A stretch of 64,000 nucleotides of DNA from Lepidodermella squamata (lineage: Eukaryota; Animalia; Gastrotricha). The stretch lies in assembly GCA_047495785.1 (NCBI GenBank), contig JBLDXI010000024.1, positions 1,860,001 to 1,924,000 of the forward strand. The letters run 5' to 3'. Shown here piece after piece: positions 1 to 46,027 of this stretch. The notes beneath the pieces were generated by a model. It was not told where the DNA came from, ran no database searches, and saw nothing but the letters and a program-made list of their open reading frames with translations. Made by a program: the position numbers and the translations under genes. The number at the start of each line of letters is the position of its first letter. Position 1 is the first letter of the stretch.

Positions 1-974
1 GCAAGCATTGGAACATGGCCCAGGAGTTCGTGGATGCAATCTCTGGGAACAAAATTATTTGTTCAGGTCAATCGGAATTAACGAGACACTCACGGTTCCG
101 GGCTGTGATGTGGCGAAGATGGATGCCGAATATACTGGGTACACATGAATACGCGGTAGGCCAAGCTATAAAGAAAATGCCGTGATGACAGCAACCCAGA
201 GACAGGTCGTAGTTGAAACCCAGTCTGCCTTTTCAGAAAACTCGAGACGTCTTCGAGCTGCGGAATGAACGCAGGCGCGTAGATTCCTTCGTCCTCCATT
301 AGGTTGAAGACACGGATGAATCCGGAGTAAGCATGCGTCTTGTGTAGCTCTTTCAGCTTAGAATATACCGCACGCCAGGTTGACACCTCATCGCTGGTGA
401 ATTCAACTCGTGGAATCGGAGATCCCCTGAAAATGAAGAGTGTGTATAATTCTGTAGGTTAAGAGGAAAATTAAGGTTACGTTTTATGGTTGTAAGCGAC
501 GTTGGCGATCGCATTTCTGCGGGCACGGTAATTGCTGTCATGGAATCCCTGAAATTTGAAAAATTCACCATTAATTTGAATTTCTATCAAGCCGTGACTT
601 ACTGGATGACCAGAATCTTCCGTCGGGTCGAATTTCGTTATGCATTCGAGACATTTATCCAGCTCAGTAATGTCTTTCGGATACCAATACTCGCTTGCAG
701 TTGAATTGTTCGACGATATTATTAGCTCAATATGTGAATCGATCTTGCAGTTCCTCAAAGCATCCAGTAATTCTCGGCCATCGCACGATTCTGTGCTATA
801 GAGTTTAGTTTCCACCAGAAAATCGCGCTTGCTTTGGTTGAATTTGTTGTTTCGAATTTCGAGTCGCTCTACTTCGGCACCATTTATCTCCTTGATGGCG
901 CTGTATATACAGCTGAGGGCTTTTGCTGGTTGTTCAACGCCTTCGATAAGAAAAACGCATCTGTTTTCGCACAT
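1..974 (-). CDS. TH: Tyrosine hydroxylase-like aromatic amino acid hydroxylase (multi-exon; 3' part lies off the window)
   Basis: Spliced exons read [12 protein letters not shown]...[39 protein letters not shown] and [17 protein letters not shown]|[14 protein letters not shown]. SSPxHSPEPDC and HVPMLA match TH better than PAH or TPH. GT-AG introns at about 602-550, 481-428 and 94-43. Confidence 0.85.
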
Positions 975-1034
975 TGAGCTGAGGATTGAGCTTCTTTACC
1001 AAATTACAAAGATATATTCGGGGAAATTTCCGTT

Positions 1035-1070
1035 GAGACTGAGAAATTGACAAAGATCGCGCTGCTTATA
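1035..1070 (-). promoter_or_regulatory. TATA + Inr core promoter of TH
   Basis: Minus-strand TATAAG (1070-1065) lies 30 nt upstream of the A in TCAGTCTC (A at 1040), which is ~65 nt before ATG 974. Confidence 0.55.
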
Positions 1071-1507
1071 TTTGCGTGAAGTGCATACGTGACGAAGTTC
1101 TTCGTGCACCTAATTAGCGGCTCTGGGTATTGTCATCATGTCATGATACAATGGCGCGTCTGTTAAAAAAAACTCGGAATCGGCGGCGAAAGTGTATGTC
1201 TGGATAATTAGTAGGAAAAGTAGAAAAAAATTAACGCGAGCGCCGACAGCTTATTACAGATCCCTTATCTTTTGATGATAATTATAGTCAATGCAAAAAA
1301 TGAATTCGCTTCCAATTATAAGCAACTAGTCTAGAAAAGTTCAAAGATGGCGCAGACGCCTCCCTCACTTTAACCAACAATAAAGCATGTAGTGGAGTGA
1401 GTGCCGTAACGACTTGCCTGGAATAGAAACATGCGCTTCATGCTTTTTGTGAGCTGAAAAAACTGGCGTTCAGTTCTGTCTTTTGATCATCAAGGCAGCA
1501 GACAGCA
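1071..1507. repeat. Cluster-specific non-coding module, copy 1 (upstream of TH)
   Basis: 1325-1507 matches the reverse complement of 6249-6432 (~85-90% by eye) and, more loosely, 6806-6918. 1071-1163 matches 6585-6662. Confidence 0.9.
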
Positions 1508-2094
1508 CGTAGCGGTGATATTAGAAAATACTAGAAGTTGTCGTTTCCATTGTCTGTGCTTCGAATGCGCATTTTTGTATATCATCATCAACTTCAGGCG
1601 TGGTACAGTGGAACCATCCGAAATGACTTCTAATTATAATTTTATTGAAGGCTTATTTTATTTGAACCTATGCAAAGGAGTCCATCAATATGAATAAGGA
1701 AATTCTCTAATTAAAGTTGTTGTTGCGGGAAATAAACCAGTGTTAGGCTGTGAGAAACTTTGAGGCCGATTCTTTGATCAAACTCCAAGCGTATTCTATG
1801 TCCTGTTCGGTGGTTTTCGCCGCACAAATCGCTGAGTAGTTCGGCAGATTTGCAACATCAGCCGGCGTAGGGCGAGGCGAACGGCGAACGGAATAACCTA
1901 TTTCATTAACGTAACTGCGCCCCCCCCTCCTCCATGGGAACTTGAGATTCCAATGATTTCCTCACACCTTGATCGCTATATAATCATGCATCGTGCCCCT
2001 ATAGAATGAACCGTATATTTTATTAAAAAATGAATCAGTCCTGGAGTTTCAGCGATGTTAGAATATCATCATGCACTATGCGACATATATACAC

Positions 2095-3883
2095 TTAATG
2101 TGGCAAGTTGTCCTCTTTCTGCCGATTTTTACAGCCAATTTTCAGTTGAATAAGCGGGCGCCCAGGAGAGAACCGTTCGGCCGCTGACGTAACATCTGTC
2201 AAACCGACGCCTGTTTCCGGTAGGAAAAGCAGGCAAAACAAGCATTCAAGAGCAGCAACGGCAGCAAAAGGCAGGAAGGAATACTGGTGGATTGTGATCT
2301 GCATGGCGGGGAAAATGAAGCTGCTGATGATGTTGCAAGACCAACTGGCGAACATTGACACGCTCATCCCCATTGGTCGAGCGTTTTGATCGAATAACTC
2401 AGCTGCGATGAAGCAAGGTATCGGGCCGGGTCCAGACGCAAAAAACAGGTGAAACAGAGCGAAACCCAAAATGCTCGCTTGGAAAACCTGGAAAATTGAT
2501 TGATAAAAAATATTTGAAATGGATGAGAAAAGCTTACGTTATAGCTCAGGACGATGACCAGCAAAATTTGAGCCAGGGAAGTGCCGAGCAGTCCGATGAT
2601 CATCAAAGGACGCCGTCCAACTCGATCGATGATTATCGCATTGATGACATTTCCGATGAGATTTGCGACTGATACGCCGAAGTTCGCGAGTCCAGCCCTG
2701 TCAGAAGGTAAACCAGCGGAGTAGAGCACGTTGGCTGCATAGAAGAAAACCGGGGCTAGACCGGTCAGTTGAGCGCATATAAGCATGTTCACGACGATAA
2801 TTAGAGGCCACCATAGTGAGCGATTTTTGAATATGGCTTTGACTGAAACTAATTCGACCTTCGCCTCAGCTGCTGAAATTTCTTTCAATTCGACCAACTC
2901 AGCTTCGACTTCTTTCGCCGACCTTCCGCGAAGCTTTTTCAACGCTGACAAATCAGCTGTTAATACTTCATCTTATTGCAACAAGTGAGATCTTCTACCT
3001 TCTATAGCTTGGTCCTCCTTGCCCTGGTCAATTAAAGCTCTAGGACTTTCGACGACAAGAAACAAGGCAGCTCCATCCACTAGATATATGCCAAGTTCGA
3101 ATACTTGTAAATAAATAAAATTAATATGTGGCTAAAACACTAATTATTTGTAAAATTTACGAAATAAATATTGCCACGTTGACTCTTTGCCTAGCACAAA
3201 ACTGAGACCCAGAATGTTAGAAACGAGAAGGCCGAGGCTGATTCCAATGCCGATGAAACTGCCGAGTATACCTCTCAGTCTGCCAGGTGCATGCTCTATA
3301 ATTATCGAAGGCGCGATCACCAGAGTTAAGCCAGCTTGAAACCCTAACACTGTCCTTCCAATGTACAGTGGAATGTGGCTCTCAGTCCAGGGTGTCACAA
3401 ACAAGATCACAGCGCCAGCGCACCCAATAGCAGATCCCAAAATTAAAGAATTCCTCCTTAGAAATTGAATAATTGTTAAACGTTGTCGTGCAATTATTTT
3501 CTAAATTATTCTCACTTTCCAAATTTGCTTGAAATTTTGACTGGAATCCATGTTGATCCGATGATGCCGCCAATTAGGTACAAAGCGACTATAGCAGACC
3601 AGTTCGAATTCAGTTCAGCGCTTGACAAAATTTGGCCAGTTCTCGCAAATGACTGGTTGACGTAGTTATTCATAACTTCAAACGGGGCATTTATCACGCC
3701 TATTATGCAAGATCATTTAAAAAATTAGCCCTGAAACGATTCATCAAAAATATAGTTACCGAGGTTGTAACCGAATAGGAACGAAGAGCCAAGAACGATC
3801 GAAACATTGCAGTAGATCAGATAGAAAGTCCAGCCTCCCGCTTGCTTCTCCTCTGAAACAGCTGATTCACCGGTCTTGCTCAT
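2095..3883 (-). CDS. SLC2A/GLUT-family MFS transporter (multi-exon) with divergent substrate site
   Basis: Motifs GSSFLFGYNLG|VINAP, EHAPGRLRG, VESPR, QLTG..VFFY, DRVGRRPL, GPGPIP, AELFDQNARP and LPET. ATG 3883, stop 2095. Confidence 0.9.
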
Positions 3884-4219
3884 GTTTATCAACTATTCTC
3901 CACTTGCTTATTGTTGAAAAACGTTTTGCGGTAAAAAGGAGTGGGACTATTATGAGGAAATAATATTTTATAATTTTTTGAATGAACGATGTAAATTCGT
4001 CGTCAAATAACTTTTCCAATTAAAATTTTGATTAAAACGCGCTCACATGATTACGGCGAGGAGGCGTGCCGGGGTAGACTGCTCACGTTTTAATAATCTA
4101 AAATAAGATCATACCTTTTCATACCTTAAGCACTCATTGTTCATAGTACTTCGTCCTCGAAGAACATAACACGTTAGCTTCAGTAACCGGTTTTTTCACT
4201 TGAAGAGCTATCACTAATA

Positions 4220-6028
4220 ATGGACGCTGACGAATTTCGCCTGCGGGGCAAGGAGATGATCGATTTCGCAGCTGATTACCTGGAAAACATCAGCGAGAGG
4301 TTAAATATTAAATATTATTAAATTGATCAATTAAGTAATTCAAATGAACAATTAAAGACCAGTTTTCCCAACCGACCTGAAGCCTGGATTTCTGACTCCG
4401 CAGTTACCATCGGAAGCGCCACAGGAACCGGATAGTTTCGAAGCTGTGATGGATGATATAAATCGAGTCATACTACCTGGAGTGACTCATTGGCATTCTC
4501 CGAAGTAGGTTCAATTGTTCCTCTCAATTAAACTAACCAAAGCTTCCTTTGACAAGGTTTTTCGCCTATTTTCAAACAGCAAACTCCTACCCGGCGATTA
4601 TGGCTGACATTCTGTCAGATGCAATTGGATGCATAGGATTTTCATGGGCCTCTTCGCCTAGCTGCACTGAGGTTTGCAATTCAAGTTCTTAAAACTTGAC
4701 ATAATTGAATTACATTTCTCTAATTTAAATTAGCTAGAGACGGTTATGATGGACTGGTTGGCGAAAATGTTGCAACTCCCGGAGCATTTCTTGTTCAGCT
4801 CTGGCCAAAAAGGTGGTGGCATAATTCACGGAACGGCAAGTGAAGCGACATTCACAGCACTTTTAGCCGCCCGCAGTAGAGCAATAGCTCAACAGAAAGA
4901 ACTTAATCCCAATTCAACAGCGGGCAGCGTCCTCGATAAATTGGTCGCTTTCTGCTCTGACCAGGCTCACTCCAGTGTTGAACGAGCTGGTTTGATGGGC
5001 TGTATCCAACATTTCGTGAAAGTCCCGAGTGATGACGAAGAATCCATGCGAGGTGACCGTCTGAAACAAGCGATTGAAACTGCAATAGCTCGGGGTCTGG
5101 TTCCTTTTTACGTTGTAGCAACACTTGGAACTACAAATACCTGTGCTTTTGACAATTTGTTGGAAATCGGCAAAGTTGTCGCAGAATACAATGAGAAGAG
5201 CGAAACGCCGATTTGGCTGCATGTTGATGCCGCTTATGCTGGTAGTGCGTTCTGCTGTCCGGAATATCGGCATTATTTGAGCGGCGTCGAATTTGCCGAC
5301 TCTTTCAACTTCAACCCTCACAAATGGATGCTGGTTAACTTCGACTGCTCTGCCATGTGGTTTAAAGATGCCTCTCAAGTGGTCAGTTGAGAATTCTCGA
5401 AACTTTTTTATTGCTGAAATTGTTGCTTATAAAGGTGGATGCGTTCAACGTCGACCCTCTGTACTTGAAGCACCAGTTTCAAGGGCAACAGCAAGTTCCG
5501 GACTATCGACATTGGCAAATTCCTCTAGGACGTAGATTCAGAGCGCTGAAGCTCTTCTTTGTCCTTCGATTGTTCGGAGTTCGAGGAATTCAGGTTTTTC
5601 ATCTTAACGCATTTACTTTTGTATACCTACTTCTGCTGCATATAGGATTATATCAGAAAGCAGATTGGACTAGCTCATTCATTCGAAAATAAGCTGAAAT
5701 CTGACAAACGATTTGAGATAACGGCAGAGGTCACGATGGGACTGGTTTGCTTCCGATTGATCGAAGTTAGCGATGGTGACGTCAATGGGCCTTCCGAAGC
5801 TCTTTACAAGGCAATTGCGAGCGATGGCCGAATTCACTTGGTTCCGACGAAAGTAAAGTAAGAGCATCTTTTTGCAAAATAAGGTAATCAAATAAAAAAT
5901 GCTATGATTTCAGGGAAAAATTCGTGCTGCGACTGGCGATTTGTGCGGCGAAAACCACCGAACAGGACATAGAATACGCTTGGAGTGTAATTAAAGAATT
6001 GGCCTCAAAGGTTCTGACATCCCAATAA
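4220..6028 (+). CDS. DDC: Aromatic L-amino acid (DOPA) decarboxylase, 7 exons, intact
   Basis: [44 protein letters not shown] lysine motif NPHKW, DPLYLKH and [15 protein letters not shown] (DDC-type, unlike the HDC/TDC ..PLSRRFR). The exons splice in frame. Confidence 0.95.
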
Positions 6029-6248
6029 CGCGGGTTTAAATCCCACAAAAACACTATTATTTTGAGAAAATTTCCTTATTAATGTTGACTGATTCTTAAG
6101 CATTACTTCAAGTAAAATTAAACTCGAATATGATCAAAATGAAAAGACATTTTCCACAGGATCACGCCTGAAATTGATGATGATACAAAAGTGCGCGTTC
6201 GAAGCACAGACAATTGACACGACAACCGCCAGTCTTATCTATTACCCC

Positions 6249-6505
6249 TGCTGTCTGCTGCCATGATGAGCAAAAGACAGAACTGAACGTCAGTTTTTCC
6301 ACTCACAAAAAGCATGAAGCGCATGTTTCTATTCCTGGCAAGTCGTTACGGCACTAACTCTGATACGTGCCTCATTGTTGGTTAAAGTGAGGGAGGCCCA
6401 TATGCGCCATCTTTGAACCTTTCTAGACTAGTAGGTGCCGTCAACACACGAATTCATTTTTTTCTATGGTGACTAATTAGCAAGACATTTACCTTTGCCG
6501 CCGGT
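6249..6505. repeat. Cluster-specific non-coding module, copy 2 (inverted, just 3' of DDC)
   Basis: Reverse complement of the 1325-1507 block, extending into the CGGCGGC..TGTC..TAATTAG..AGAAAAAAATGAA motif. Confidence 0.9.
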
Positions 6506-6576
6506 GCCGACTAGGTGTACCGCGTGCACTAGATTGTTCCCGGCGAAAGTTCGCGCGAAATGTGGTTATTCTTAAG

Positions 6577-7010
6577 CTGCAATTATGCGTGGGAAGTGCA
6601 TAGTTCCTCGTGCAACTAATTAGTAGATTTAGAAATATTCATCATACAATGGCGCGTCTGTCTGGGAACCGCGCTTGAACATATTTTAGCTCAATTTCGT
6701 GTGGATACTCGCCTGGTGTCTTGATCTAGCATATGTCTTGCTAATTAGTCACCATAGAAAAAAATGAATCTGCGTGGTGACGGCAAACCAAACCAACGAT
6801 AACCAACTAGTCTAGCCAAGTTCAAGTTGGAGCAGTGGCCTCCCTCACTTTAACCAAGAATATGGCATAACCAAGAGTGGGTGCCGTAGCGAATTGCCCG
6901 GATTGGAAACAAGGCAGCGGCGGGGAAGGTTGCTATTGTCTTCTTAGTTAGGTAAGTAGAAAAAAATGAACACGCGAGTAGCGATGGCATACGAAAGATG
7001 GCTTATCAAC
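6577..7010. repeat. Cluster-specific non-coding module, copy 3 (upstream of the GNAT)
   Basis: Contains matches to 1071-1163 (TCGTGCA.CTAATTAG, ATACAATGGCGCGTCTGT), 1325-1430 (ACTAGTCTAG, GCCTCCCTCACTTTAACCAA, GTGCCGTA) and 1205-1240 (AAGTAGAAAAAA..AAC.CGCGAG). Confidence 0.85.
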
Positions 7011-7092
7011 GACACTCGGCTGTTTAAGCTCACAGTTGACAGTTCAGCGCTTCAGTCTCCTTCAATAACGCATTCAACTACCCAGAAAGTTC

Positions 7093-7722
7093 ATGGCGAA
7101 TCACCAAGTTGCTGTCAAACTGCTCACCCGCGATCGCCTCGATGAGGCTGTTGATGTGTTGGCGAACTCATTTATGCAGAATCACCTCCCCACAATCCAC
7201 CTCAAACAATTTACTCGCGACAAGTTCCCGATATTCGTCCGAGACTTTATTATCGAGACTTGCATCGATCAACATGTTAGCCTTTTCATTGAAGACTCTG
7301 CTGGTAAAATGCTTGGCGTTGCTGTCGGCGAGATATGGCATATCGAGGAGAATCCTTCTCTGCCTGATCAGGATGAAGAGATGTTCATCCTGATGGGAGA
7401 GCTCCAAAAAATGTTGCCGCAAGAGATGGTTGCAGAATCTTGCAATGGAACAATTTTGCATCTCAGCATGGTCGCGACTCGAGTTGGTGAACATGGCCGT
7501 GGGGTCGCGACTCTGCTGATAAAATCAATGGTCGAATTCGCGCTGATGAATGAATTCAAATACATCTTCGGCGATTGTACATCGGTTGAGACGCAGCACA
7601 TATTTTTGGATAAATTAGGCTTCACCAACGCTGGGGAAATCATGTACGATACATTCAGCGACAAGCTCAAGGGCTGCCCTGGCAAAATTGTTTTAGCGGT
7701 CAAGAAATTAGTCCAAGATTAG
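7093..7722 (+). CDS. GNAT acetyltransferase resembling insect arylalkylamine/dopamine N-acyltransferases (intronless)
   Basis: 209 aa. Features include the N-terminal 'LDEAVDVLANSF' helix, 'DSAGKMLGVAV', the AcCoA motif HGRGVATLLI and 'DCTS..TQHIF.KLGF', as in the iAANAT family. Candidate TTTAAG + TCAGTCTC promoter at 7023-7059. Confidence 0.7.
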   Translation: MANHQVAVKLLTRDRLDEAVDVLANSFMQNHLPTIHLKQFTRDKFPIFVRDFIIETCIDQHVSLFIEDSAGKMLGVAVGEIWHIEENPSLPDQDEEMFILMGELQKMLPQEMVAESCNGTILHLSMVATRVGEHGRGVATLLIKSMVEFALMNEFKYIFGDCTSVETQHIFLDKLGFTNAGEIMYDTFSDKLKGCPGKIVLAVKKLVQD

Positions 7723-9883: not shown

Positions 9884-12800
9884 ATGGCAATGTATACGGG
9901 CCACGACTTTCGGATGGTAAAGGACAATTTTATTTAGCTTAGTCAATTATTCTGAATTTTCTATTGCAGCAATTCAGATGCGTAGACTGTGATACTCCGT
10001 ATTGCGACTTGGACGACAAGCCCTTGAAAGTTCTAACAAAGTGTGGGCATCAAATCTGTGATCATTGCATCGGGAGAAGCAAGCAAAATGGCGAGCTCGT
10101 CTGTCAAGCTTGTTCTTACAGCTATGAAGTTGATGGAGATGACTTCAAAGGTGATACAAGAATTTATATTAATTTATTGGCAAATTCTAAATAATTTCTT
10201 AAATTTTCTGCTTAAAAATTTCCAATAGCGGATTTTTTCATTTAACTCGATAGGATTCCCTGTCAATTATGCAACTTGGAAGGTGATCGCGTTTATCTCA
10301 AAACGAGATGAAGAAATCAATCGAGAGTTCAAGAATGACATGTTCGGCGCAGTTATCGACGAGTGCACTCACCTACCAATGAGCAATGAGATAATAGACT
10401 GCGCTCACTGCAACCACAAATTTTGCCAGATCTGCATTTTTCTGCACTTGGAACGAGTAAGAATCGAAACCCTGTGGCTCGGGAAACACGTAACCTACGG
10501 TTATTTTCTAGTAACATTTTTAACATCCGTTGCCTTAATAGATATTGAAAATTCGTGGAGATTTGATGACTTTTTTCGAAAAAAATGGCCCAAAAATTCG
10601 AGCTCAAATAAGGTAAATAAATTAATTAAAAATTTTAGAGAAAATCACTCATTTTTCTTTTTTTTTAGCAATCTCGACAACGTTTTCGAGCTTCGAAAAG
10701 ACACTGCTATCAATATTGCGGATAGAGAAAGAGTTGAGCAATTAAAAGCCTCACTAGTCAAAGGTGTCGGAGCAAATTTTTTGCGATTTCTTTCTCGCAT
10801 CGAAACTTTGCTGAAAATCGATCATCTACAAACGATTGAGAAAAATTGCAAAGATCTCGATGGACTTGCTCTGGAGCAATTGACACCGGATCACGTTTTC
10901 AAGTCATATTGCATTCTTCGTGAAATGGCCCAAAAGTACGGCACTGCATTGGACGATTTGAAAGCTATTTCGATCGAGCCATGGACAGATCATAATGTTC
11001 GCGATGAATTTATGTTGGTTATGTTAGACGAATTTCCGACACGACCCAAGGTAAAAATATACTGAATTTTAATCTCAAAAATTTTGATTCAATGCAATCA
11101 GGCTGTTCCTCCGATGATCAGCTGCTTGTTCAAATTCGCCCGATCTGGTGATCTCTTGTCGATAAAGCGGATTATCGAAGACCTTCCGCCCGATTGCGTC
11201 AAGTACCGTCATTTGGGGCAAAATGAACCTTTGGGGCTAATTGGCCAAAAATTGAGATTTTCACATTTTTATCGATAGCTCAAAAATTACAAGGTAAAAC
11301 TTCACAAAAATTTACGGGGACGATTATCAACAAGCCTCCTACAAGCCTGCAAATTTCCAGCCACGTATGTCCCGAAATGAGGTCACGGCATGTTGTTGCA
11401 CAGAGGTGAGTTTAGGGAGATAAAAATGACCCCTCTAAATTGAATTACCTGGAGCCAATCACGAGGTTTGATGATCAGATGAAATTTTTTCCTTCGACCA
11501 TTTTCGTCGTAGATGACAGCAAAAAAAACCGCGACCCCAGGCGATGCACAGGTATGGCTAGGTGATAGTGGCCAAATTACCCCATGGAAAACTCAATGAT
11601 GGGGGCTAATTGGCCACCCTTGTCCTTATAATGGGTTTTTAGTATTTGATGATTGTGAGGGTTGAATGGTCGAGTGGTTGTGATGCGTCCATCAGAACTT
11701 GAGTTATCTGATGAGCGACGGTTCGAATCCTCATAAAGTAGCATTTTTTTTGCTCCGCATTTAATTTTTTTAATTTTTTTGTTAATTTTCCATTTTAATT
11801 ATTCCACTAACACAACGTATGCCGGACATGTTTTGTTCGGGAGACGTTTAAAAGTTGCTCAGCAATAAAACTCTCAGAAAAAACGGAGAAACTAATTAAA
11901 AATTATTAAAATGGACAATTAAAACTAAAAAATTTAAAAAATTAAATGCGGGGCAAAAAAAATGCTACTTTATGAGGATTCGAACCGTCGCTCATCAGAT
12001 AACTCAAGTTCTGATGACGCATCACAACCACTCGACCATTCAACCCTCACAATCATCAAATATTAAAAACCCATTATAAGGATAAGGGTGGCCAATTAGC
12101 CCCAAATCACCTGTCCAATTTGCCCCAAACCTGGGGCAAAATGAGCTTCCTATAAAATCGGAATCAGGACCCTCTGAAACGTGTAAAAATGCGAAAAAAA
12201 CAGGGGGTCATTTTTTTCCCGCGCCCATTTTGCCCCAATTTACGGTATGTAGTCGAATTTGCTGACGAAAGCGACGATAACAAGAGAATGCTACACCACG
12301 CGTGTGAAAATGGTCACTTGGAACTGGCTCGATATCTCATCAACGACCTGGGGGCTGATCTATGGGCAAAGGTCCACGAAGGTAGCCGAACAGATTTTCA
12401 CGAAGAAGACACTCTTCCGATTCACCTTGCCTGCCTGAACGGGCATCTGAAAGTCGTAAAAATGCTTTGTGCAGCCGATTCAGGCCTCGCAAATGCGCGC
12501 GAATTTAGCCGAAGAACCCCGTTACACAACGCCGCTGAAGCCGAGAGTGAGGCGATCATGAAATTTTTAATCGACAAAATGAAGGTGGATGTCGATGCTC
12601 AAAGGATGAGTGATATTTCCGCCCTACATATAGTCGCAAAAGCTGGCAATCTTAACTGTGTTCGACTTCTGCTGATCAGGGGTGCCGATACGCAATTGAT
12701 TGGAGGGCTGGAGGGTCGCCTAATGCCAGCTCATATCGCAGCTAAGCTTGGTCATCTCGAAGTTTTAAAGCTCTTGATAATAGCCGACCCTACTGTTCTG

Positions 12801-13226
12801 AAGTGCACGGAAATCTTGACCCCGCTAATGGCTGCTTGTTCTAATGGAAAAATTAGCATTGTTAAATACTTGCTGTCAATCGGCTGTGACGTCAACTTCA
12901 GATCAAAAATTGGGAAAACAGCGGCGATGTTTGCTGCTGAAAATGGCATGCTTAAAACTTTGAAGTTATTGGTCGAAGCCGGGGCGGACTTGGCCCTGCT
13001 CAGTCAACGTTCTAAGGCTTTGTTGGACAATTTTTCAGCCATTCATCAAGCAGCTAGGCTCGAACATTTGAAAGTTGTCAAGTTCATCTGCGAACGCAAA
13101 CCGGAGCTTGCTCATTTGAAAAGTGAACAAGGTGAAACTGCTCTGTCGATCGCTGAAAAACGTGGCAATGTTAAGATGGCCGAATATTTGCGCAAATTTC
13201 TAGCCTCCTCGCCTGTTCAAGGATGA
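9884..13226 (+). CDS. RING + B-box-like + helical region + ankyrin-repeat protein (TRIM-like), with an exon interrupted by a MITE
   Basis: C3HC4 RING (CVDC..CGHQICDHC..CQAC), GFPVNYA, CTH..CAHCNHKFCQIC..H and ~9 ankyrin repeats. Removing 11206-12247 restores ...DCVKYVVEFADES... Confidence 0.7.
11206..12245. mobile_element. Non-autonomous DNA transposon (CCGT termini, TA target duplication; Tc2/pogo-like)
   Basis: Left end CCGTCATTTGGGGCAAAATG, right end CATTTTGCCCCAATTTACGG. TA at 11204-11205 and 12246-12247. Internal ~200-bp inverted repeat (11601-11800 / 11900-12102). Confidence 0.9.
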
Positions 13227-13559
13227 GAACTTGAGTTATCGCATATGCGAATTACCTAACTAACTCATACAATGATTTCTAGCCGTAATTTCGTAGAATT
13301 TTTCACTGTCACACTCTCCAATTCGATTCTGAATCTGATTCTTATCCGTCTATACCGAATAAAAAATATGATTTTGCGATCTCAAGTCATTGTTCATGTT
13401 ATCACCGACTCCGAGAGGTCAAGATAGCGTTCGCTGAATAGCCAATAATCAAATACCATCTCCATCGATGCGATACACCTCGCAATTTCACCCTCTTATT
13501 CATTCATAAACCGTTTTATTATATATAAAGTATGTGTAAAAAATCAAAGAAACGACTAA

Positions 13560-13959
13560 TTATTTGGCATTTTCCGTTTGCTGCACGTTACTTAGCAGAG
13601 CGCGTTTCAGTTCCAGAATTTTCGACGACTTTCCAATATACTCTTTCGGCAGTTTGCTGTCCGTGTCGGCGCCACTATTGTTGCTGACTTCGGTCGGCAT
13701 TTCGAAGATCAAATGCGTATCCAGGGCGTGAGAAAAGTTCCCTTTGAAAAGTAAATTTCCTATTTGAACTCCAGGGTTGGGTGAATCGAGCGCCTAAATA
13801 TATTATAAATGACGGTGTTAAATTTAGATACTTGAGAAAAATACAAACCACAAATTTAATTCCTTCCTGCTTTATTTCTTCAACGAAATTATCGGGAGAA
13901 TCAACGAAGTCCAGAAGGAGATACATATCTTTATCAGCAGCGGGTTCACCGGAAGACAT
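13560..13959 (-). CDS. GTF3C6: General transcription factor IIIC subunit 6-like (2 exons)
   Basis: The spliced product MYLLLDF...IKFV|ALDSPNPGVQIGNLLFKGNFSHALDTHLIFE...EYIGKSSKILELKR resembles the TFIIIC35/Tfc7 N-terminal domain. Confidence 0.65.
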
Positions 13960-15606
13960 GTCAGTAATCTTTTAATATCTATAATGCAAACGCATATTAT
14001 GGATAAGATTCATCCATTAGGCGTAAAATATCCGGTTGTCGGCCACCCTTTCACTTCAAGTTTCACGCCAGAATAAATCGAAACATACCGAAACTTGAAT
14101 TAAAATTTAGTCAACTGTGTAAATAGCTTTATTTCATGCTAACATTATTTCATGACGAGCAGTTCTGTCAGACAAACGCTGCTCTTGAATACGGATTTCA
14201 CGGGACCTGCGCTTGAGGATAAGCGACAAACTCCTTAACGCCATTTTCAATTTGATAGAACATAGCGATCTCATAGGGTTAGGACTCGAAAGCGCGCTTC
14301 TAATTACTTACGTTTTTGGAAGAAGCTTTTGACTCTTACACCTTGTGCCGCGTTTTCTTTACAACCTCTCTTTTCGTGTAGTCGGCGATGAGTAGGTCAG
14401 TGCTTAGTCGCTGTTTGAGGCCGCGAGACGGATTCCGGAAAATTGCTATTCATAATATTCGGTCATCACCGTGATCACAATGCAATCAACTGTATGGACC
14501 AAGATTATCATGTTGAGCAAGGTAATGAGCAAAACTCATCGCAAAACGAAACAGGTAAAATAAAATAAAGTATTTCAAGCTCTCCTGGAGCGAATTGACG
14601 GTGCTAGCAGAATGTTGTCAACTAACCCCGGATTTGTTGCCAACCCGATACTCCAGACCTTAAGCTCATTGCTAGACCTTGGTAAGTCCAAACTTACCTG
14701 TGTAGCTGACCAGGAAGAAAGAAGAAAGAAGGAAGAAGGTGTTAATCAATTGGAATATCAATTGCGGTAAGCTCATTTGATAAAAGACCTCGTAATATCG
14801 TAGCGCAGTATTGTCATCCATGGCTTGGACTGTTCCGGCAACTGCAAGAAATCTTTTCAAACAAAGACTACTGGCTTTACTGCAAACATGAAAACATCAT
14901 TGTAACGACTGACAGAATTGAGATTTATTAAATTAAATGCTTTCAAAGCTCTCAAGAAGAATGCTAATGAGGTGAAAGCAGACAACCCCCACGCCAAATG
15001 GCGCTATGGCTATGAAATTCACTGCGGGGACTTCAGGTACAGCAGCCAAACTTTCTGATCGTATCCTCTCTGATGACTAGAATAAGCTACTTCTCCGTGC
15101 TTTCAAACCGGACCTGAAAAAAACTGGTTCGAGGTTTGAACCAGGATCCCGCGGCGGCAAAATAAGTCGCTTCGATCTGTTTAGTATTTCGAGATTTTAT
15201 TTTTTAGCGCGTAAAATTGACGCCCACGTGATTGAAAACATTGACGGCAAATAAAAGATATTCATTAAATTGATGGTGTAATGTATTCAAATAAAACCAC
15301 TATAATTTTTCATTTTATTAGCAACAAGAGTCCTTAACTACCCCACACAGCAAGGCTCGGGTCGATCTGTGATCTTCCGACAATGCTCCCCGCGTTAGAA
15401 CCTTGATCTATACCGTTTCCCTATGAATTTTACCTCTAAAAGCTCTGCTAGGGAAAAATAAGCACGCAATAAGAGCAATAAGGGAGTTTAGATTGCGTTG
15501 CTTCCAGCCACTGTTTTGTCATGAACATTAATTAAAAACTATGCAAGCCGGTCGCCTGGTTTACTAGAGAATTTGTGGTTTCTTATTGTTAGATTTTTAG
15601 CGCATA

Positions 15607-18600
15607 ATGAGTGCATCTCGCGACAAGAATTTGATCGCGAGCGGTCAAATACCATATCTGCCCCCTATCAATGACAAATTGTCAGTCGAACCAGATCGAT
15701 GGAAGAAAAGCAAGCTGCTAAGTTATCGGAGAGAGAATGAGCAAAGGAAAGTTCTTGATCATATCATCATGCAGCAAGCGAAGAAGCGGCGTACAGAGCT
15801 TGTTGAATTAATGGAAACAGAACCTCCGCCGATTCCACCTCCTGAATATCCAGCAGAAATGATGTCACGTGATCGGAAAATCAAGATGAATTATATTTTT
15901 CTGAAGACATGCGTGGAGTCAACCCAGATGCCACCTCTCCAGGAGTATACAATTGACAACATTGAATCTCGCGTGCCAGAACGCCTTAAGAAGTTACCTG
16001 GCTATCAGAGCCTCATTGAAGAGGTAGCAACCGAAGTTCGGTCAGATTTTGACAAGAGTATGAAAAAGGCATTGGGTAAGTGATATTGTTATCTCGGTTA
16101 ACGTGTAATTTAAAACTGCGCTTACAGTTCAAAAGACTTTGATCACACCTAACATCAAAGGGTTGAATGCTGGAGAGATCATCATACCTCTGCCAGATGA
16201 ACCAAGGTTTGCTATTCATCGTCATTTTATTTATTATGAAACATCTCTTCTTTCAGTGGGCTTGATTATTCAAAACCTTGGCATCATACTTATGTGGAGA
16301 GCAAGAAAAGTTTGCAGGCTAATTTGCAGACCGTGCACCCTTTAATGATGCAAGTTTTGCGGTTATGCCAGCAACATCTTGGAAACACTCTCTTGGTTGA
16401 CATTTCTACTTATCGGTAAGTGCATCTACTGAAATCTTAAGATCCCCAGCAATGCTCCTCTATTATGTAGGAAAAAAGGCGTGATCGATTTTGAGTCTTT
16501 GAGGCGTGATATTACAGTTACAATTGAAAAAGCTGAGGAAAAGTTGCTGCAGTCGTGGTATCCAAATGTTGTCAGCATATTTTCCGATCCAAAATGCAAA
16601 ATCAAGCTGCGAGGCGAGGGATCGAAAATATTTTTCAACTGTTTGACCGCCCTAATTTCCAATCAGGTAATCACTTATTCATCCAATTTATTTATTAAAT
16701 CCAACATTTTCATCCTCTTTAGCTAAGAGACTTTTTACATCGGACCGTCGATGCTGTCGTCGATCTGTTTCGTATTGATAACAAGTCCAAGCTTCCTCTC
16801 CTTAAAACTGAATTGATACTGGAAGACAACAAAATGCAGTTTTATCCCACTTACAAGGATCTTGAAGAATTGGTTCTATTTTTTGTCGACGCTATTCTGA
16901 AATCCATGCAAAAAGTTCCGACTGTCAGTTCCTTTCTTGCCGGTGGTAATGTCGACTACATTCGTGTTACCATCGCCGAGGACATCGTGAAAGCTGCCAA
17001 AACCGAATTGAAGGCTTCTTGCAAGCGTAATTTTGAGGAGCCAGCTGCATACCTTCAGTGGTATGGTAAGTATTTTCGGGAGATACAGAAATTTGTGATG
17101 AAATGAATTGAATGTAGTGGAAAATTATGACTACCTGGTTAATGGGCAAGCCCAATCAGAAATCGAGAAATTCATCAGCGAAGGCAGGGAGTTCGAAGAA
17201 TACACTAAGGTAATATTTTTTCTATCAATTTGATTGAATTTGAATTCCCAATATTGCTCTTCAGCTTATCGAAAGCTATCGTGATCTGGCGTACAAAATC
17301 ATGATCCTCCCTCCCGCTGAATACTACGATTTGATTCGCTTGGACTGCGAGGACCTAAAGCGTGGGCTAGTCGCCGCTGCCAGAAACCTCGCCGGTCAGC
17401 TCATCGAAAAGGTTGTGAATGATCATCGGAACGAGAACACTAGTATTTGCGATGAATTCACCACGATCAAAGCCCGAGCATTAAAAGTGCCCGAAACCTC
17501 GGAAGAGCTCGTCGACATGGTCAATTTTGTTGAAACAGCTCGATCTATGGGCATGCTCAAGCTCAACGAACGCATTAAATTGTGCGTTGAACGCCTTCAG
17601 TACCTTCTCGAAGCGTACGGTTTCACAAAAGCCGATATAGATCTCAACAGTGATGTTTTGCTTTGGCCTAAGAAGATTAGCCCAGTTTTTGATGACAACG
17701 ACTTGGTAAACTGAAAATTTTAAATTACGACCTCGTTTAAAGCCTTTATTTCATTTTAGCTAACTGAAAAGTCGAAAGAGCTCGGCGAGAAAGTGTTGAC
17801 GGAAAAACGTGAAAAAGTAATGATTGAACTCGCGAAACTCAAGACCCGCGCTGATGAATTCAACGACTACGGCGAGTTGGACATGATGGCTCAATACGTT
17901 CAAGACGTTCGAGCTGTTCAGAAGCGCCTCGAGGTCGCTCAAGAACAGATCGCTTGGGTCAACAAAGTTTGTTAAATAACGTCGATTTTCTTGAAACTAC
18001 ATACATTTTCTTCTCTCGTTGATAGGAGGAAGCTTTGTACAAATTCGCCATCAGCCAATACCCAGAAGTAGAAGAAATTTCGACGGCGGTCGATCCTTTC
18101 TACAAACTTTTCTCGGTGGTTTTCAAATGGCAACGTGCCGAGAAGAAGTGGATTGATGGCAGCTTTACTGACCTCAATGCCGAGGTTATTGAAGCCGAAG
18201 TCGACGAATACTGGCGCGAGTTATACAAAGTTCAGAAAATTTTCAATCAAAAGTAATTTTGGATTTTATTTTTTTTCTCATATGAATTTTTTCGGAAAAT
18301 GGATCTAGATATAAAGAAAAGCTTCGGCTAATGAAAGAGGAGCGTTTGAAACATTTAAAGAAAAAACTTCAGACTCATGATCCCCTGAGACGCATGAAAA
18401 CATTGAATCGTCTCGTTATTGACATGGAGTAAATGAAATTGCTAAATTCACGACGCGGCTGTAATTATCACTACATTATTGTCATTTTTCGCTTCTTGTA
18501 TATTCGAGCTTTGCTATCCATGAAAAATTGCTGAAAATAATTTTATAATTGATGTGTTTCAGGATCAAAAGGATGCAAATGGAAGTTGATGAGCGAAATC

Positions 18601-21600
18601 GCGAGAAAGCGAAGAAACGCCGGCACAAGGAGGCCGAGGGGTCTGAAATGACCCCGGAGGAAGAGGCTGAGCTTGCCGATGAAGTTGTCCACCCTCCAGT
18701 TGCTCTCGGCATTGTCACAACTGTTCAGGAGCAGATCGGCGAGTTTAAGACTCACGTTCCAACTATCAGCATTTTGTGTAACCCTGGCCTGCGGCAACGC
18801 CACTGGGACAAAATGTCCGAAGTAGCCGGGTTCAACTTGACGCCAGATTCTGGAACTACCCTACGAAAAGTTCTTAAACTTCCGATTCAGGAATTTATGG
18901 ATCAATTCGAGGCAATATCAGGCGCTGCGACAAAGGAACACTCGCTTGAAAAGGCGATGATCAAGATGAGAAACGATTGGGAGCCGATGGTTTTCAACTT
19001 GACGCCTTACCGCGATTCAGGCATTTCAATCTTATCGTCAGTCGACGAAATTCAAGCTCAACTCGACGATCAAATTATTCGAACGCAAACTATGCGCGGC
19101 TCGCCGTTTATCAAGCCGTTTGAAAACGAAATCAGGATATGGGAAGAGCAGCTTCTACGAATTCAGGACACGATCGATGAATGGTTGAAAGTACAGGCGC
19201 AATGGCTGTACTTGGAGCCTATCTTCGCTTCACCTGATATCATGCAACAAATGCCGGAAGAGGGCCGTCTATTCACACAGGTTGATCGGTCATTCCGTGA
19301 AACTATGAAGCACACGGCTAAAAATACTAGCGTTCTGGTCGCTACAAGCCTGTCAGGTATGAAATTTGAGTATTTTCCCTCACACAAATTTTGCGAATAG
19401 CTTACAAATTTTGAAATGACATTTTCATTATTAGCCAAAGGAGTGTTCGCAGGTAAACTTTTGCACGATGGCACGATATCATTTTCTGGAGTCTAATTAA
19501 TTTTATACAAAGAAAAATAACTGTGGCCCACAATTTCGGAAAATCACTAACGCATGATTTTTAAGGCGGAATTTTCACTCTTTACATTTTTTTCATCCAG
19601 GATTGTTGGAAAAGCTGGTTGATAGCAATGTGTTATTGGACCGAATTAACAAAGGTCTAAATGCTTATCTCGAGAAGAAACGTCTGTTTTTCCCGCGTTT
19701 CTTCTTCCTGTCCAACGACGAAATGCTGGAAATTCTATCCGAGACAAAAGACCCAACTCGAGTTCAGCCTCATTTGAAGAAGTGTTTCGAGGGTATTGCC
19801 AAGTTGGAATTCGACTCGATTCAAGACATCAGGGCCATGTTTTCATCTGAAAATGAGAAAATCACCCTGTCGGAGGTTATCTCCACCGCTGAAGCTCGCG
19901 GCGCCGTTGAGAAGTGGCTGATTCACGTCGAACGAGTCATGATTCTGTCGATGAAAGACGTAGTCCTAGCGTCATACAACGCCTATGCGAATGAAGAGCG
20001 TCGAAATTGGGTTGTTTCATGGCCTGGCCAGGTCGTGCTGTGCGTCAGCCAGGCTTACTGGACCACCGAAGTTCACGAAGCAATCCGGTCGAGCAAAACC
20101 GGCCTTCGCGATTACCACAAGCGTTTAGGCGCTCAACTCATGGAAACTGTCGAGTTGGTTCGAGGCAAGTTGACTAAGCAGCAGCGAACCACGCTAGGAG
20201 CTCTTGTCGTCATTGATGTCCACGCTAAGGATGTCATTAATGAATGCGTGCAACAGGGCGTTGTTTCCGAGAACGATTTCATGTGGCTGTCTCAGTTGCG
20301 TTACTACTTTGAAGACGGGTTGATGATGGTTCGCTGCACTAATGCAACGATTGGCTACGCCTATGAATACCTCGGCAACTCGCCACGTTTAGTCATCACC
20401 CCGCTGACGGATCGTTGCTACCGAACTCTGATCGGCGCCTTCCACCTTAATCTAAACGGCGCCCCTGAAGGCCCGGCCGGGACTGGTAAAACCGAGACGA
20501 CAAAGGATTTAGCAAAAGCGATCGCAGTTCAATGCGTCGTGTTCAACTGTTCGGACGGTCTTGATTACATAGCCATGGGCAAATTTTTCAAGGGTCTTGC
20601 CGCCTGCGGTGCCTGGGCTTGCTTCGACGAGTTCAACCGCATCGAGCTCGAGGTGTTGAGTGTCATTGCTCAGCAGATTCTGTGCATCATTCGAGCTGTC
20701 CAGGCTCACGTTGATTCTTTCATTTTCGAAGGAACGGAACTTCGGCTGAACCCTATGTGCTATGTCGTAAGTTCTAGCCACCTTAATTTTAAAATTTAAT
20801 TTTTTTGAATTTTCTTGAAATTGAAATTTTTTGAAATTTTGAAATATTGAATTCTAAAATTATTTAACATTTTCTCAATTTAAAGTTTTTGTTTAAAATG
20901 TTAAAATTGAAAAAATTGAAAAATAATTTTATCGTAAGTTTACTCTTTTTTTTTATTTTAAAGTTTTTAATATGAAAATCTTAATCCTTAATCTTAATTT
21001 TTTAAATTGTGAACAAGTTTAAAATCTCATTTTTTTCAGTGCATCACCATGAACCCGGGTTACGCTGGGCGCAGTGAGCTTCCAGACAACTTGAAGGTCC
21101 TCTTCCGACCCGTGGCTATGATGGTCCCTGACTACGCGATGATTGCTGAAATTTCGCTGTACTCGTACGGTTTTCTCGACGCTCGAGATTTGTCCGTCAA
21201 AATCGTCACGACCTACAAACTGTGCTCCGAACAGCTGTCCAGCCAGTTCCACTACGACTACGGCATGCGAGCCGTCAAATCCGTACTGTTAGCCGCTGGC
21301 AACCTCAAATTGAAGTACCCGAACGAGAAGGAGCAGATTCTACTTCTCCGCTCGATTATCGACGTCAATTTACCGAAATTTTTAGCCCACGATATACCGC
21401 TATTCGAGGGTATCATCTCCGATTTGTTCCCAGGTGTTTCGCTGCCGAAACCAGACTACAGAGTTTTCCTCGAATCTCTGGACGCGATTTGCCAGAAGAA
21501 AAACCTGCAAAATGTCGACTTCTTCCAACAGAAGGTTATCCAGACCTACGAAATGATGATCGTCCGTCACGGTTTCATGCTTGTCGGCGAGCCATTTGGT

Positions 21601-24600
21601 GGGAAGACCAAAGTCCTCGAAGCTCTGGCCGAAACTATGACGACGCTAGAAGGCAACGGCGTGACTGAGTATGAAAAGGTCATGTTTCGAACAATCAATC
21701 CGAAAGCGATTACCATGGGCCAGTTGTACGGTCAGTTCGACCCGGTTTCTCACGAATGGTCTGACGGTATCGTGGCGAACACTTTCCGTGAGTTCGCGTT
21801 TATGGACACGCCTGACCGGAAATGGGTCGTCTTCGATGGCCCTATCGACGCCGTTTGGATCGAAAGTATGAACACTGTGCTGGACGATAACAAAAAACTG
21901 TGCCTCGTTTCGGGTGAAATCATCCAAATGTCGGCGGTTATGAGTTTGATTTTCGAGACAATGGACTTGTCTCAAGCTTCGCCCGCCACTGTCAGCCGTT
22001 GCGGTATGATTTACATGGAGCCGACCACGCTGGGCTGGCGGCCGATTTTCAAGAGCTGGCTAAATGCTAACCACCCTACAATACAGCAAAACAACGAAAT
22101 TCTCGAGGCGCTCTTCGAGTGGATTGTCGATCCAACGCTTGATTTTGTTCGGAAAAATTGCAAAACCTACACACCAACTGGACAGGCTAATATGGTCCGA
22201 TCTCTGATGTACCTCATCGAAATGTTGCTGCACGAGGGCGCGATTAAGGCGGAAACTGAGGAGAATAAACACTTCCCAGTTTGGTTGATGGCTGCGTTCC
22301 TTTTCGCGATTGTTTGGTCGCTCGGCGGTGTTATCGATGGCGAAAGTCGGCCGAAATTTGACCAATTTTTCCGCGAATTAATCAGCGGCAAAAACAACGA
22401 TCTGCCTACGCCGAAAGCTCTCGGCAAGCTGGACATGCTGTTCCCGTCTGAGCAGACCGTCTTTGACTATTACTACGAGGTACTGAAATCCACTGAAAAA
22501 TTCCTTAATTAAATTATAGAAATTTTGTTTTTAACTTGAAATATTTATGTGATAATTTGTTTAAACACAGCAAAGAGATCCTATCATTGTAAGTACTTGA
22601 TGGTGTCATTTAAGGATTATGAGAAAATTTCCCTCGAGTTTCTAGGATAATTACAGCGTGTCCCATGAGTAACGCAATCAAATAAAATACACGGAAAAGG
22701 GTTCAGAAACTATAAAATGAGTGGCAAAGTCTCATCTCATGGCCAGAAAATTGTAGAAAAATTCAAAAATTCGCGAGAATAGATAGCAAGTATGTTACTT
22801 GTTAATAGAATTGAAAAAGTACGGAGAAATCTGGTCCAACCTGGAAAAATACCGAAAATTACCGAACCAGTTACCATCGGGATTTTCCAGGTTTTCTTCT
22901 GTAAATTTTCAATTTTTTCGATAAAATCACGGATAAATGATGGGAGATTCTCTTGGTAGGTTTAATTTGAAAAAATTACTTGAATTTCCAACAACAATTT
23001 TTCAAATTAAAAAATAGCTGCGCAATTTTTGGGACGCGCTGTAATGTTACCTTTAAAATTGAAAATTGCCTTTGGGATACATTTTGAAAATATAGAAAAA
23101 ATGTTGTCATAGTATAGCCATTGTAAATGTGATTTGTGTGTCATTTTGAGTTATCCGAAGCATTTTTATTGATTTATTAATCGTGATTTTTTTCGACAAT
23201 TTATAGCAAAAAGCCCGTGGTGCTTGGATGCATTGGAACGAAATGATCCGTCATCAGAAAGTTGATACTGGGCGAAAAATCCAGGAAATTCTAGTGCCGA
23301 CAATGGACACGGCCCGTTTTATGTACCTGTTGGATCTATGCATCCACCACGACCGTCCTATCCTGTTCTGCGGCCCTACTGGTACCGGCAAATCGGTATA
23401 CGTTCAAGAGCTGCTTATGAACAGCCTGCCACGTGACCAGTACATGCCGGCTTTCCTTGCGTTCTCGGCGCAAACGTCGGCGAATCAAACGCAAATGATT
23501 ATCATGTCGAAGCTGGACAAGCGGCGTAAAGGCTACTTTGGCCCTCCGATCGGCAAGAAGGCCATCATTTTCATCGATGACGTCAACATGCCGGCGAAGG
23601 AAGTCTACGGCGCCCAGCCGCCTATCGAGCTGCTGAGAATGTATTTCGATCATCAGTATTGGTTTGATCTGAAGGATATGAGCAAGTTAATCCTTCAGGT
23701 AGGTCCTCTTTAAAATTCGAGAGATTTAATTTTTTTTATTCGTATCTCAGGACATCCTTCTTGTCGCTGCTATGGGTCCACCGGGTGGAAGTCGCAACTT
23801 TTTAACGCCGCGTTTCCTCCGTCACTTCAACGTTATTTCAACCCCACCGTTCAACGATGAAACAATGAACAGAATTTTCTCAACTCTTTACAGCACTTAT
23901 TTGAGGGTAAGGATGGCGAATAATTTTCCGATAGTTATCGTCCACGTCGCTGAAAATCAATTGGTATTTTAATAATTAAACTATTTAATGAACAATAGCA
24001 ACCTGGAAAAGACGGAACGGTTTGTAGAATATATTTTTTAATTTGCGCCATTTTATAAATTTTCCGCTAAATTCAGCATAGCTAATAATTTGATTAATAT
24101 CAGCGGTTAATTTAAGTTTATATTACTATTTATCGCTTTGTAATTTATCAGCGCATCGCTGAAACTAGATCCCATGTTGACAAGCTGCAGGTAAATAACG
24201 AAGAAAACGAAAATCACAGACATTATTTTCGTCGTCACAAAATTTTCAGAGCATAAATACTTTTATTTAAATAATTTTTCCTTCCACGATTTCATTTTTC
24301 GCGATTTAAAATTTCGTTATTTCTAATTTTTGCAGAAGGGAGAATTTTCGCCGGAATATTTTACCGTTGGAAATCTCATCATTCAAAGCACGATGGACGT
24401 TTACAAACAAGCCATGTTGAAGCTGCTGCCCACCCCAGCTAAATCGCATTACGTTTTCAACCTGCGAGATTTCAGCCGCGTCGTTCTTGGATGTTGCCTG
24501 CTTCGCAAAGAGCAAGTCAGCGATAAGAAAATGCTCGTTAGGTAAATATTTTGTATGACATTTAGCAAGTAAAACGTGGGCTTGGCAACATTGTTGGCAT

Positions 24601-31820: not shown

Positions 31821-32697
31821 CAATTATTTTTCATCAATGTCGAACCTTTCTTAGTTTGTATTTGTTAAATACACAGTATACCACCTAAAACTTTTACACG
31901 ATATTTTGAGACAGGGTCATCACACGTTTCTGATATCTCACTATTATGATATATTTTTATCAACTAACGCTTGAAATTTTTATTTTAATGATCTATTGTA
32001 TTTATTGCGACCGGAAAATATTTTCGGTAGTGCGGGAATACCATAGAAACAATTAATTGTTGTGCCTTTAAATTACGCATTTGAAATCTGAAAATCAGGT
32101 TCATAATAAAAAAAATGATGCGCTTCTAAAAGGTGTCGAATTGTTCATAAAAGTTTTAGAATTTCGTTGTGCGACGTTTGAATTTTCATAATTCTCGATG
32201 GCTAACATTGCAGTCGGAAGTCTGAAACCTCCGAAATCGCTGAATTCTGAGGCAGTAGAAGTGACTTTGGAAAACTGGGGCCGATGTGTATGTGTATACT
32301 TTTGAGCGGCCACTATATGAATCAACGACTTGTGGTAAAATATTCACATCTTCTTATGGAAAAATTCCCGCAAATTCCAGTTTGCAGCAGATCTGATGGC
32401 GCTGAAATCGTATGATAATAAATCAATCCGGTGACATTTGATCCTGAGAATTTTACTCCGGGTAAACCCCAACATTTCAAGTCATTCGAGTCATTCAAAA
32501 ACTGACCCAGGCAAGTTTCAATTTTTTAATATTTATTGCAGAGTAAAAATCGTTGCGGTAATATCGAGATCGAAAATGAAGTTTTCAATATAATATCACA
32601 TGAGATCATTGCAGGTAATCACAAACAAACTATCACAGAGTAATTAATGTCTTATTTCGTATTATGAGCAATTCAATTTTCAATTCCTTTTTGATTT

Positions 32698-38268: not shown

Positions 38269-38386
38269 TCTACTCAAATACTTTCATAACAAAAATCTAC
38301 ATCTGCTGCAGATAACACAAAAAAATAATAATCAATATCACTATATAAGAAACCACAACAATTTATTTTTCTTTCGGCGGCGTGAT

Positions 38387-40530: not shown

Positions 40531-40596
40531 TTTGGCGGGAATTTTTAATGCGCCAAATCCAAGAAACGAAAGTTTTTTCTGCGGAAATCGCGCCAA
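40531..40596. promoter_or_regulatory. Cluster of E2F-like sites upstream of RPA2-MCM3
   Basis: TTTGGCGGGAA (40531-41), GCGCCAAA (40550-57) and CGCGCCAA (40589-96). Confidence 0.5.
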
Positions 40597-41005: not shown

Positions 41006-41034
41006 AGTTCTTCTTATCAGCCTGTTTCGATAAA

Positions 41035-41932: not shown

Positions 41933-42084
41933 TAACATCGTGATTCTTCAACTTTGATCTTGGACAGTGGCATTCTTTTCGATATTTCATTTTCCCGATG
42001 ATCGCTCGTTATTCTGAAATCTTACGTTAAATAAATTTGATGTAGTTCTCATAGATTTTATACGATCAAATTTTACTACCCAAA

Positions 42085-46027
<3,943 letters not shown>

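Follow-up and report, generated by a model that had tools for sequence, protein, structure and literature searches.

The first 7722 positions of a 64,000-nucleotide stretch of the compact genome of the gastrotrich Lepidodermella squamata (GCA_047495785.1, contig JBLDXI010000024.1, positions 1,860,001 to 1,924,000; the whole stretch is called the window hereafter) hold four contiguous genes, encoding a tyrosine hydroxylase (TH), a transporter of the GLUT family, a DOPA decarboxylase (DDC) and a GNAT-type amine N-acetyltransferase (GNAT). We put the probability at about 0.5 that these genes constitute a linked pathway, contained in one locus, which leads from tyrosine through DOPA and dopamine to N-acetyl- or N-acyl-dopamine. 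In such a pathway, TH would hydroxylate tyrosine to L-DOPA, DDC would decarboxylate L-DOPA to dopamine, and GNAT would N-acetylate or N-acylate the amine with an acyl-CoA, yielding N-acetyldopamine or a related N-acyl-arylalkylamine. All three enzymatic steps would be cytosolic, and the transporter may move a substrate or product of the pathway. That dopamine is the substrate of the GNAT and that the genes are co-regulated are inferences, as are the cargo of the transporter and the use of the product; that use could be the tanning of an extracellular structure or the inactivation of the amine.

The gene models underlying this proposal are spliced, with introns of 42-62 nt that are all canonical GT-AG, and positions 1-7722 contain no N and no gap (Table 1). 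A preliminary description of this DNA had recognized four gene families lying contiguously within less than 8 kb, and we recovered all four at the same positions, with clean models and with family matches that agree. It had also described the transporter and DDC as divergent across a 336-bp spacer, and this is borne out by start codons at 3883 (-) and 4220 (+), which leave exactly that distance between them. The spacer is presumed to act as a bidirectional promoter, and since the two genes are divergently transcribed across so short a distance, the transporter is probably co-expressed with DDC. A metabolic gene cluster is expected to hold three or more adjacent genes that are not homologous and that act one after another in a pathway; TH, DDC and GNAT, with the transporter intervening, answer to this description within 7.7 kb. 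By our own estimate, which assumes about 20,000 genes and a few paralogues per family, the chance that three consecutive pathway steps fall within four neighbouring genes is ~1e-5 or less, and we regard a chance arrangement of this kind as very unlikely.

Table 1. Coordinates, strand and basis of the features of the locus, numbered from the first position of the window
Feature	Position	Strand	Details
Tyrosine hydroxylase, 5' part	1..974	-	exons 974-603, 548-481, 426-94, 42-1; exits window at left edge; 271 aa visible
Relic inverted copy of 3' part of DDC last exon and 3' flank	1276..1832	-	local alignment and repeats I1, I2, I4, I5, I7, I9, I10
GLUT (SLC2)-family major-facilitator transporter	2095..3883	-	six exons, 506 aa; Pfam Sugar_tr; remodelled substrate pocket (predicted)
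Divergent spacer between transporter and DDC start codons	3884..4219	.	336 bp; presumed bidirectional promoter
Aromatic L-amino-acid (DOPA) decarboxylase, DDC	4220..6028	+	seven exons, 491 aa; Pfam Pyridoxal_deC
Palindromic non-coding module in DDC-GNAT spacer	6294..6911	.	repeats I6, I8, D1, D2; blastn within window
GNAT amine N-acetyltransferase, A654L / insect-AANAT clade	7093..7722	+	single exon, intronless, 209 aa

The visible part of the TH gene matches Pfam Biopterin_H (E 1.6e-42), and against the PDB it scores 143 bits with TH, 121 with PAH and 120 with TPH. We assign it to TH because this score is the highest, by 22 bits over PAH and TPH, and because the iron-ligand histidine pair of the HELLGH motif is kept; the part of the gene that encodes the third iron ligand and the residues governing specificity lies beyond the window. 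The predicted protein has an ACT-type regulatory domain followed directly by the catalytic domain. Residues 4-124 align weakly with residues 32-147 of rat PAH, and within this span the first 95 residues match the ACT domain, again weakly, while residues 96-124 correspond to the stretch where the catalytic domain of TH begins. Approximately 95 residues therefore precede the catalytic domain in our gene model. In human TH, about 165 residues precede it, and the N-terminal tail of vertebrate TH bears regulatory phosphoserines.

DDC matches Pfam Pyridoxal_deC with an E value of 4e-81, and its best database matches are animal aromatic L-amino-acid decarboxylases at 55-62% identity. In the PDB, pig and human DDC score 278 bits and histidine decarboxylase 232, and on this difference of 46 bits in favour of DDC we reject a histidine decarboxylase. 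Three catalytic residues are kept, namely the lysine that binds pyridoxal phosphate (NPHKW), the active-site histidine (DQAHSS) and the tyrosine of the catalytic loop (DPLYLKH). Given that all three are present, DDC looks like a true decarboxylase, and we reject an aldehyde synthase on the same grounds.

The transporter matches Pfam Sugar_tr on three of its exons, and its best PDB matches are GLUT5, GLUT1, GLUT3, GLUT4, GLUT7 and GLUT9, with exon-by-exon alignments that span transmembrane segments 7 to 12. It retains the motifs GYNLGVINAP, GRR, ESPR and PET, so that the sugar-porter signature and the 12-segment architecture can both be recognized; these signatures, which it shares with the Class I/II GLUT (SLC2A) proteins, together with a short first loop, speak against an SLC22 or SLC18 amine carrier. 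We then compared it with the glucose-coordinating set of GLUT1, which we take, from the structures of GLUT1 and GLUT3, to be Q161, Q282, Q283, N288, N317, E380, W388 and N415. Only Q283, N317 and N415 are kept (3/8), and the other five positions have changed (Q161 to G, Q282 to A, N288 to A, E380 to A and W388 to C), so the glucose-coordinating set is no longer complete. Because small or hydrophobic residues have replaced these five, the pocket is predicted to be larger and less polar, and glucose is an unlikely cargo. GLUT9, which has shifted to urate, offers an analogy for a pocket in which Gly, Ala or Cys stand in for five of eight glucose residues. The one feature that would tie the transporter to the pathway is the divergent spacer of 336 bp.

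GNAT proved to be a far more isolated protein. Searched on its own against the PDB with phmmer, it gave one clear match, the A654L protein of chlorovirus PBCV-1 (3qb8, E 3e-10), and mosquito aaNAT2 followed at E 0.16. A word-indexed protein search with GNAT returned no match, and an exact-match look-up returned no record. When 1.84 billion representative sequences were searched exhaustively with HMMER, only 67 relatives and no close homologue came to light; the closest are 24-34% identical, and none of the 67 exceeds 34% apart from one fragment of 36 aa. We built a family profile from 46 of these relatives, and this profile matched A654L (E 4e-46), mosquito aaNAT2 (E 3e-30), the Drosophila dopamine N-acetyltransferase (Dat; E 1e-22), Tribolium AANAT (E 7e-21), the amine-selecting C-domain of Ebony (E 2e-19) and polyamine/agmatine N-acetyltransferases (E ~1e-12). 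It aligns over its full length with amine acylators that include mosquito aaNAT2, 5b and 7, and its matches to the structures 3te4, 6k80 and 4fd5 cover ~205 residues at E 1e-22 to 3e-30, which amounts to full-length homology with the insect-type enzymes.

Structural comparison gave the same picture. The AlphaFold model of GNAT is confident (mean predicted local distance difference test, pLDDT, 93.3), and Foldseek placed A654L first (template-modelling, TM, scores 0.79/0.83), followed by Dat, Ebony and the aaNATs. TM scores against insect dopamine and arylalkylamine N-acetyltransferases lie between 0.72 and 0.79, and the shared fold includes the N-terminal helices specific to this family. The homology to insect dopamine/arylalkylamine N-acetyltransferases that had been proposed for this gene is thus upheld by profile E values and by fold. 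The acetyl-CoA motif HGRGVA is kept at residues 134-139, and the Ser/Thr pair expected after beta-5 is represented by Thr163 and Thr167, in columns that are invariant in an eight-sequence alignment. Matches to vertebrate-type AANAT and to SSAT are weak or absent, and we set both of these assignments aside.

A maximum-likelihood tree joins GNAT, as sister, to 13 sequences that form a clade (support 99/91), and like them it has a shortened C-terminus carrying a KGCxGK motif. All five members of this clade that have readable surroundings lie on dense, intron-free, giant-virus-like contigs with hallmark genes. Their neighbours are an ERCC4 nuclease (P0001); Erv1/Alr, NUDIX and SNF2 and DEAD helicases (P0004); a family-B DNA polymerase of 1532 aa and an RNA polymerase fragment (P0008); an ornithine/arginine decarboxylase (P0010); and an intein-bearing SNF2, XRN and RNase III (P0022). 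A scan with a narrower alignment added one IMG/VR viral contig, on which a further copy of the GNAT gene lies by an NAD-dependent ligase, eIF4E and PCNA. The most similar sequence that we found is a 36-aa GNAT fragment on contig L011, which is 64% identical to the C-terminus of the window GNAT and also has a viral context. More distant members of the family are bacterial (P0011, for example, lies on a bacterial contig) or archaeal, or occur here and there among eukaryotes, in a mite, a hemichordate and a foraminiferan, and the homologue in Ptychodera is located inside an amidohydrolase gene.

Two gene orders on the viral contigs may be recorded here. P0010 lies directly beside its ornithine/arginine decarboxylase on the 6.6-kb giant-virus-like contig K1HB-8YC (NCBI GCA_041443065.1), and this viral pair of a decarboxylase and an amine acetyltransferase may be seen as a parallel, by analogy, to the DDC-GNAT pair. 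In addition, the order GNAT, small open reading frame, NAD-dependent DNA ligase with BRCT is common to two giant-virus contigs (L010, 243-3204, and L011, 4-2604).

The GNAT gene itself has a GC content of 46% (54% at third codon positions), matching its neighbours, and it is intronless amid intron-rich genes. Contamination is ruled out by this host-like GC content, by the contiguous sequence and by the spliced genes on either side. Since its composition is host-like and it stands between spliced animal genes, we consider it an old resident of the animal genome; at some point an exchange of the gene with giant viruses probably took place. As GNAT is sister to the viral clade and is not nested within it, the tree is compatible with a transfer in either direction.

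The locus also carries traces of its own rearrangement. Positions 5936-6482, which comprise the 3' part of the last DDC exon, the 3' untranslated region and downstream DNA, align in inverted orientation with positions 1832-1276, with identity at 455 of the 533 columns that are free of gaps (85%, local alignment). This inverted copy sits between the start of TH and the 3' end of the transporter gene. It can still be read as a DDC C-terminal peptide, although it is decayed and without the 22 nt that open the exon. Inverted repeats of ~550 bp consequently flank the transporter-DDC pair on both sides. The spacer between DDC and GNAT additionally contains a palindrome, with arms at approximately 6324-6488 and 6733-6911, units of which recur upstream of TH at 1096-1163 and 1312-1431. 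A blastn search found no further copy of the duplicated or palindromic DNA in the 64-kb window, and this result speaks against the non-coding module being a high-copy transposon. We interpret the repeats as traces that an inverted duplication or an inversion left inside a locus that was already linked, and they suggest that the locus is old and has been rearranged in place. On this interpretation the non-coding module is a remnant of the duplication, whatever regulatory role it may have besides. An assembly join is unlikely, because the inverted copy has diverged (85%) and links both halves of the locus.

Several observations nevertheless weigh against the proposal that the four genes form a dopamine-acylating pathway. 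The substrates of A654L, the closest characterized relative of GNAT, are polyamines, so that this relative is not a dopamine enzyme, and we know of no catechol carrier in the GLUT family. A short upstream exon may have been missed in the TH model, which lacks the N-terminal phospho-regulatory tail. In GNAT, His31 (QNHLP) occupies the position where the DEPLN motif of the insect-type enzymes has its Glu, a position at which Glu is present in 38 of the 46 sequences aligned. In most insect AANATs this residue (Glu47 of Dm-AANATA) acts as the general base, and almost all activity is lost when it is mutated (PMC6070697). His31 could serve as the catalytic base in its place. Finally, we did not find the cluster in any other species, and in the one compact arthropod DDC locus that we inspected the neighbours of DDC are unrelated.

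The label "AANAT-like" that the preliminary description gave to GNAT therefore needs to be divided. Judged from sequence and fold, it is right at the level of the clade, each characterized member of which acylates an amine. It does not extend to a strict insect-type AANAT, since the best match is A654L, the nearest relatives are giant-virus genes and His31 takes the place of Glu.

The search for the cluster elsewhere covered several resources. With DDC exon 4 as the query, no match above 62% identity appeared within the length range searched, with a filter that would skip an intron-free full-length DDC. In a scan of JGI metagenomes, matches were mostly 43-48% identical and the best reached 54%, none of them near enough to represent a relative. 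Metagenome contigs from ENA samples ERZ23486787 and ERZ27333047 do represent one, with an RPA2 that is 69% identical, but these contigs stop short of the cluster. The same contigs (L012-L015) keep the order MYND finger, WH1/WH2 protein, CBF/NOC1, RPA2 and MCM that is found at 32698-45716 of the window. Their GC content is 38-39% and their genes look intron-poor; to the left of MYND, the relative has a trypsin and an ABC transporter and not the dynein gene of the window. In the literature searched on the topic, we found no description of a cluster of TH, DDC and an acetyltransferase.

If the genes do not form a biosynthetic pathway for a bulk product, they might instead serve neurons, with TH and DDC making transmitter dopamine and GNAT inactivating it. 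Their linkage would then reflect a shared cell-type control region, and the transporter would be a co-expressed nutrient carrier. TH and DDC are indeed of the standard bilaterian type, and the non-coding modules upstream of TH and of GNAT could be common regulatory DNA. Insects, moreover, inactivate monoamines mainly by N-acetylation (reviewed in PMC4394704 and PMC6070697), as Dat does in nervous tissue. The synthesis and the breakdown of an amine, however, normally take place in different cells, and the TH model is without the N-terminal regulatory tail that is typical of neuronal TH. A tail-less TH would fit unrestrained production. It leads us to lean, tentatively, toward bulk use, as the preliminary description had proposed, over neuronal synthesis and inactivation, and we consider the neuronal explanation rather improbable.

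The same low standing applies to the possibility that the functional link is confined to TH and DDC. GNAT would then be a viral-type acetyltransferase of polyamines or other amines that landed, or was retained, beside DDC, and the GLUT-type gene would be unrelated. What speaks for this is that the best match of GNAT in both sequence and fold is a polyamine acetyltransferase, that it lacks the Glu which serves insect AANATs as general base, and that its relatives with known context are on giant-virus-like contigs in five of five cases, one of them adjoining an ornithine/arginine decarboxylase. Such an accident would, however, have had to place a homologue of dopamine N-acetyltransferases directly downstream of DDC and within four genes of TH, for which the chance is small, and we judge this explanation improbable as well, though it is a serious rival to the linked pathway.

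That the adjacency is due to chance or to an assembly artefact and has no functional meaning is very improbable, for although evidence of conservation from other species is lacking, the sequence is continuous and without Ns, the intergenic distances are short, the models are clean, both halves of the locus are tied together by the diverged inverted duplication (85%), and chance would produce such a grouping with a probability of ~1e-5 or less.

The linked pathway that we favour can be set beside several known systems. The sclerotization and pigmentation pathway of insects (TH/pale, Ddc, Dat/aaNAT1 and Ebony) comprises the same three steps, and GNAT is a full-length homologue of its Dat and aaNAT enzymes. 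It differs in that the window GNAT falls outside the insect clade and has His for the DEPLN Glu, and in that a GLUT-type transporter is included here. The insect genes are also dispersed in the genome, whereas TH, DDC and GNAT lie together in this locus. The Drosophila Ddc cluster at 37C is a dense region with several catecholamine and cuticle genes, among them Ddc and its paralogue amd. Unlike the locus described here, it contains neither TH nor an N-acetyltransferase and does not assemble consecutive pathway steps.

A654L (3qb8) and its giant-virus relatives provide the best sequence and fold match to GNAT, although at an identity of only 24-34%. In contrast to these relatives, the window GNAT lies in an animal chromosome, has a host-like composition, is without the Glu-Pro motif, and stands beside an aromatic decarboxylase rather than polyamine genes. 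The metabolic clusters of fungi and plants consist of linked, non-homologous genes for successive steps, commonly with a transporter in the fungal ones, and there are a few animal cases, such as the terpenoid clusters of octocorals. The locus resembles all of these in its linked steps, and the fungal ones also in its transporter; it differs in that its chemistry would be amine metabolism of a primary type and not that of a classical secondary metabolite.

To the right of GNAT, there is no support for an extension of the cluster: ~2 kb without clear genes are followed by a RING-like gene, an ankyrin gene and a large axonemal dynein heavy-chain gene, none of them related to the pathway. The RING-like gene is a pair of Cys/His-rich, RING/B-box-like open reading frames at 9964-11300 (+) that adjoins GNAT, has no Pfam match and shows no evident link to the pathway. 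Just upstream of the ankyrin-repeat gene, at 11706-12000, is a near-perfect inverted repeat with arms of 78 nt that are 96% complementary and a loop of 139 nt, which may be a small foldback element. The dynein gene is very large (13000-32000, +), of axonemal type, with exons of up to 1103 aa and with DHC_N2, AAA_6 to AAA_9, MT stalk and Dynein_C domains. Its presence indicates that the organism has motile cilia or flagella, which speaks against a nematode even though the introns are as short as those of nematodes. Beyond it lie MYND, CBF/NOC1, RPA2 and MCM genes, more ankyrins and an Rb-like gene, none of which is linked to the pathway, so that the right side as a whole is made up of housekeeping genes; the last of these encodes a retinoblastoma-family pocket protein (DUF3452, RB_A, RB_B) in two large exons at 59105-61876 (+). 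There were no Rfam matches in the window.

The linked pathway can be taken one step further, to a version that we offer only tentatively and hold to be on the unlikely side. In this version, the animal would have assembled, and amplified several-fold, a cassette leading from tyrosine to N-acyl-dopamine, combining a GNAT of giant-virus type with TH, DDC and an exporter derived from the GLUT family. The product would be a catechol made in bulk as a cross-linker or protectant for egg shell, jaws, cuticle or adhesive. If this were true, virus-related material would have gone into the making of a biosynthetic gene cluster in an animal.

Clusters of pathway genes are common in fungi and plants and rare in animals, and a linked locus of TH, DDC and an acetyltransferase would therefore provide a simple and testable animal metabolic cluster. 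Membrane carriers of catechol precursors are poorly known, and if the locus works as proposed, its transporter would be a candidate for one. The substitution of His for Glu in GNAT and the tail-less TH are concrete handles for enzymology. The locus would also show that an enzyme family of giant-virus type has been recruited into catecholamine chemistry.

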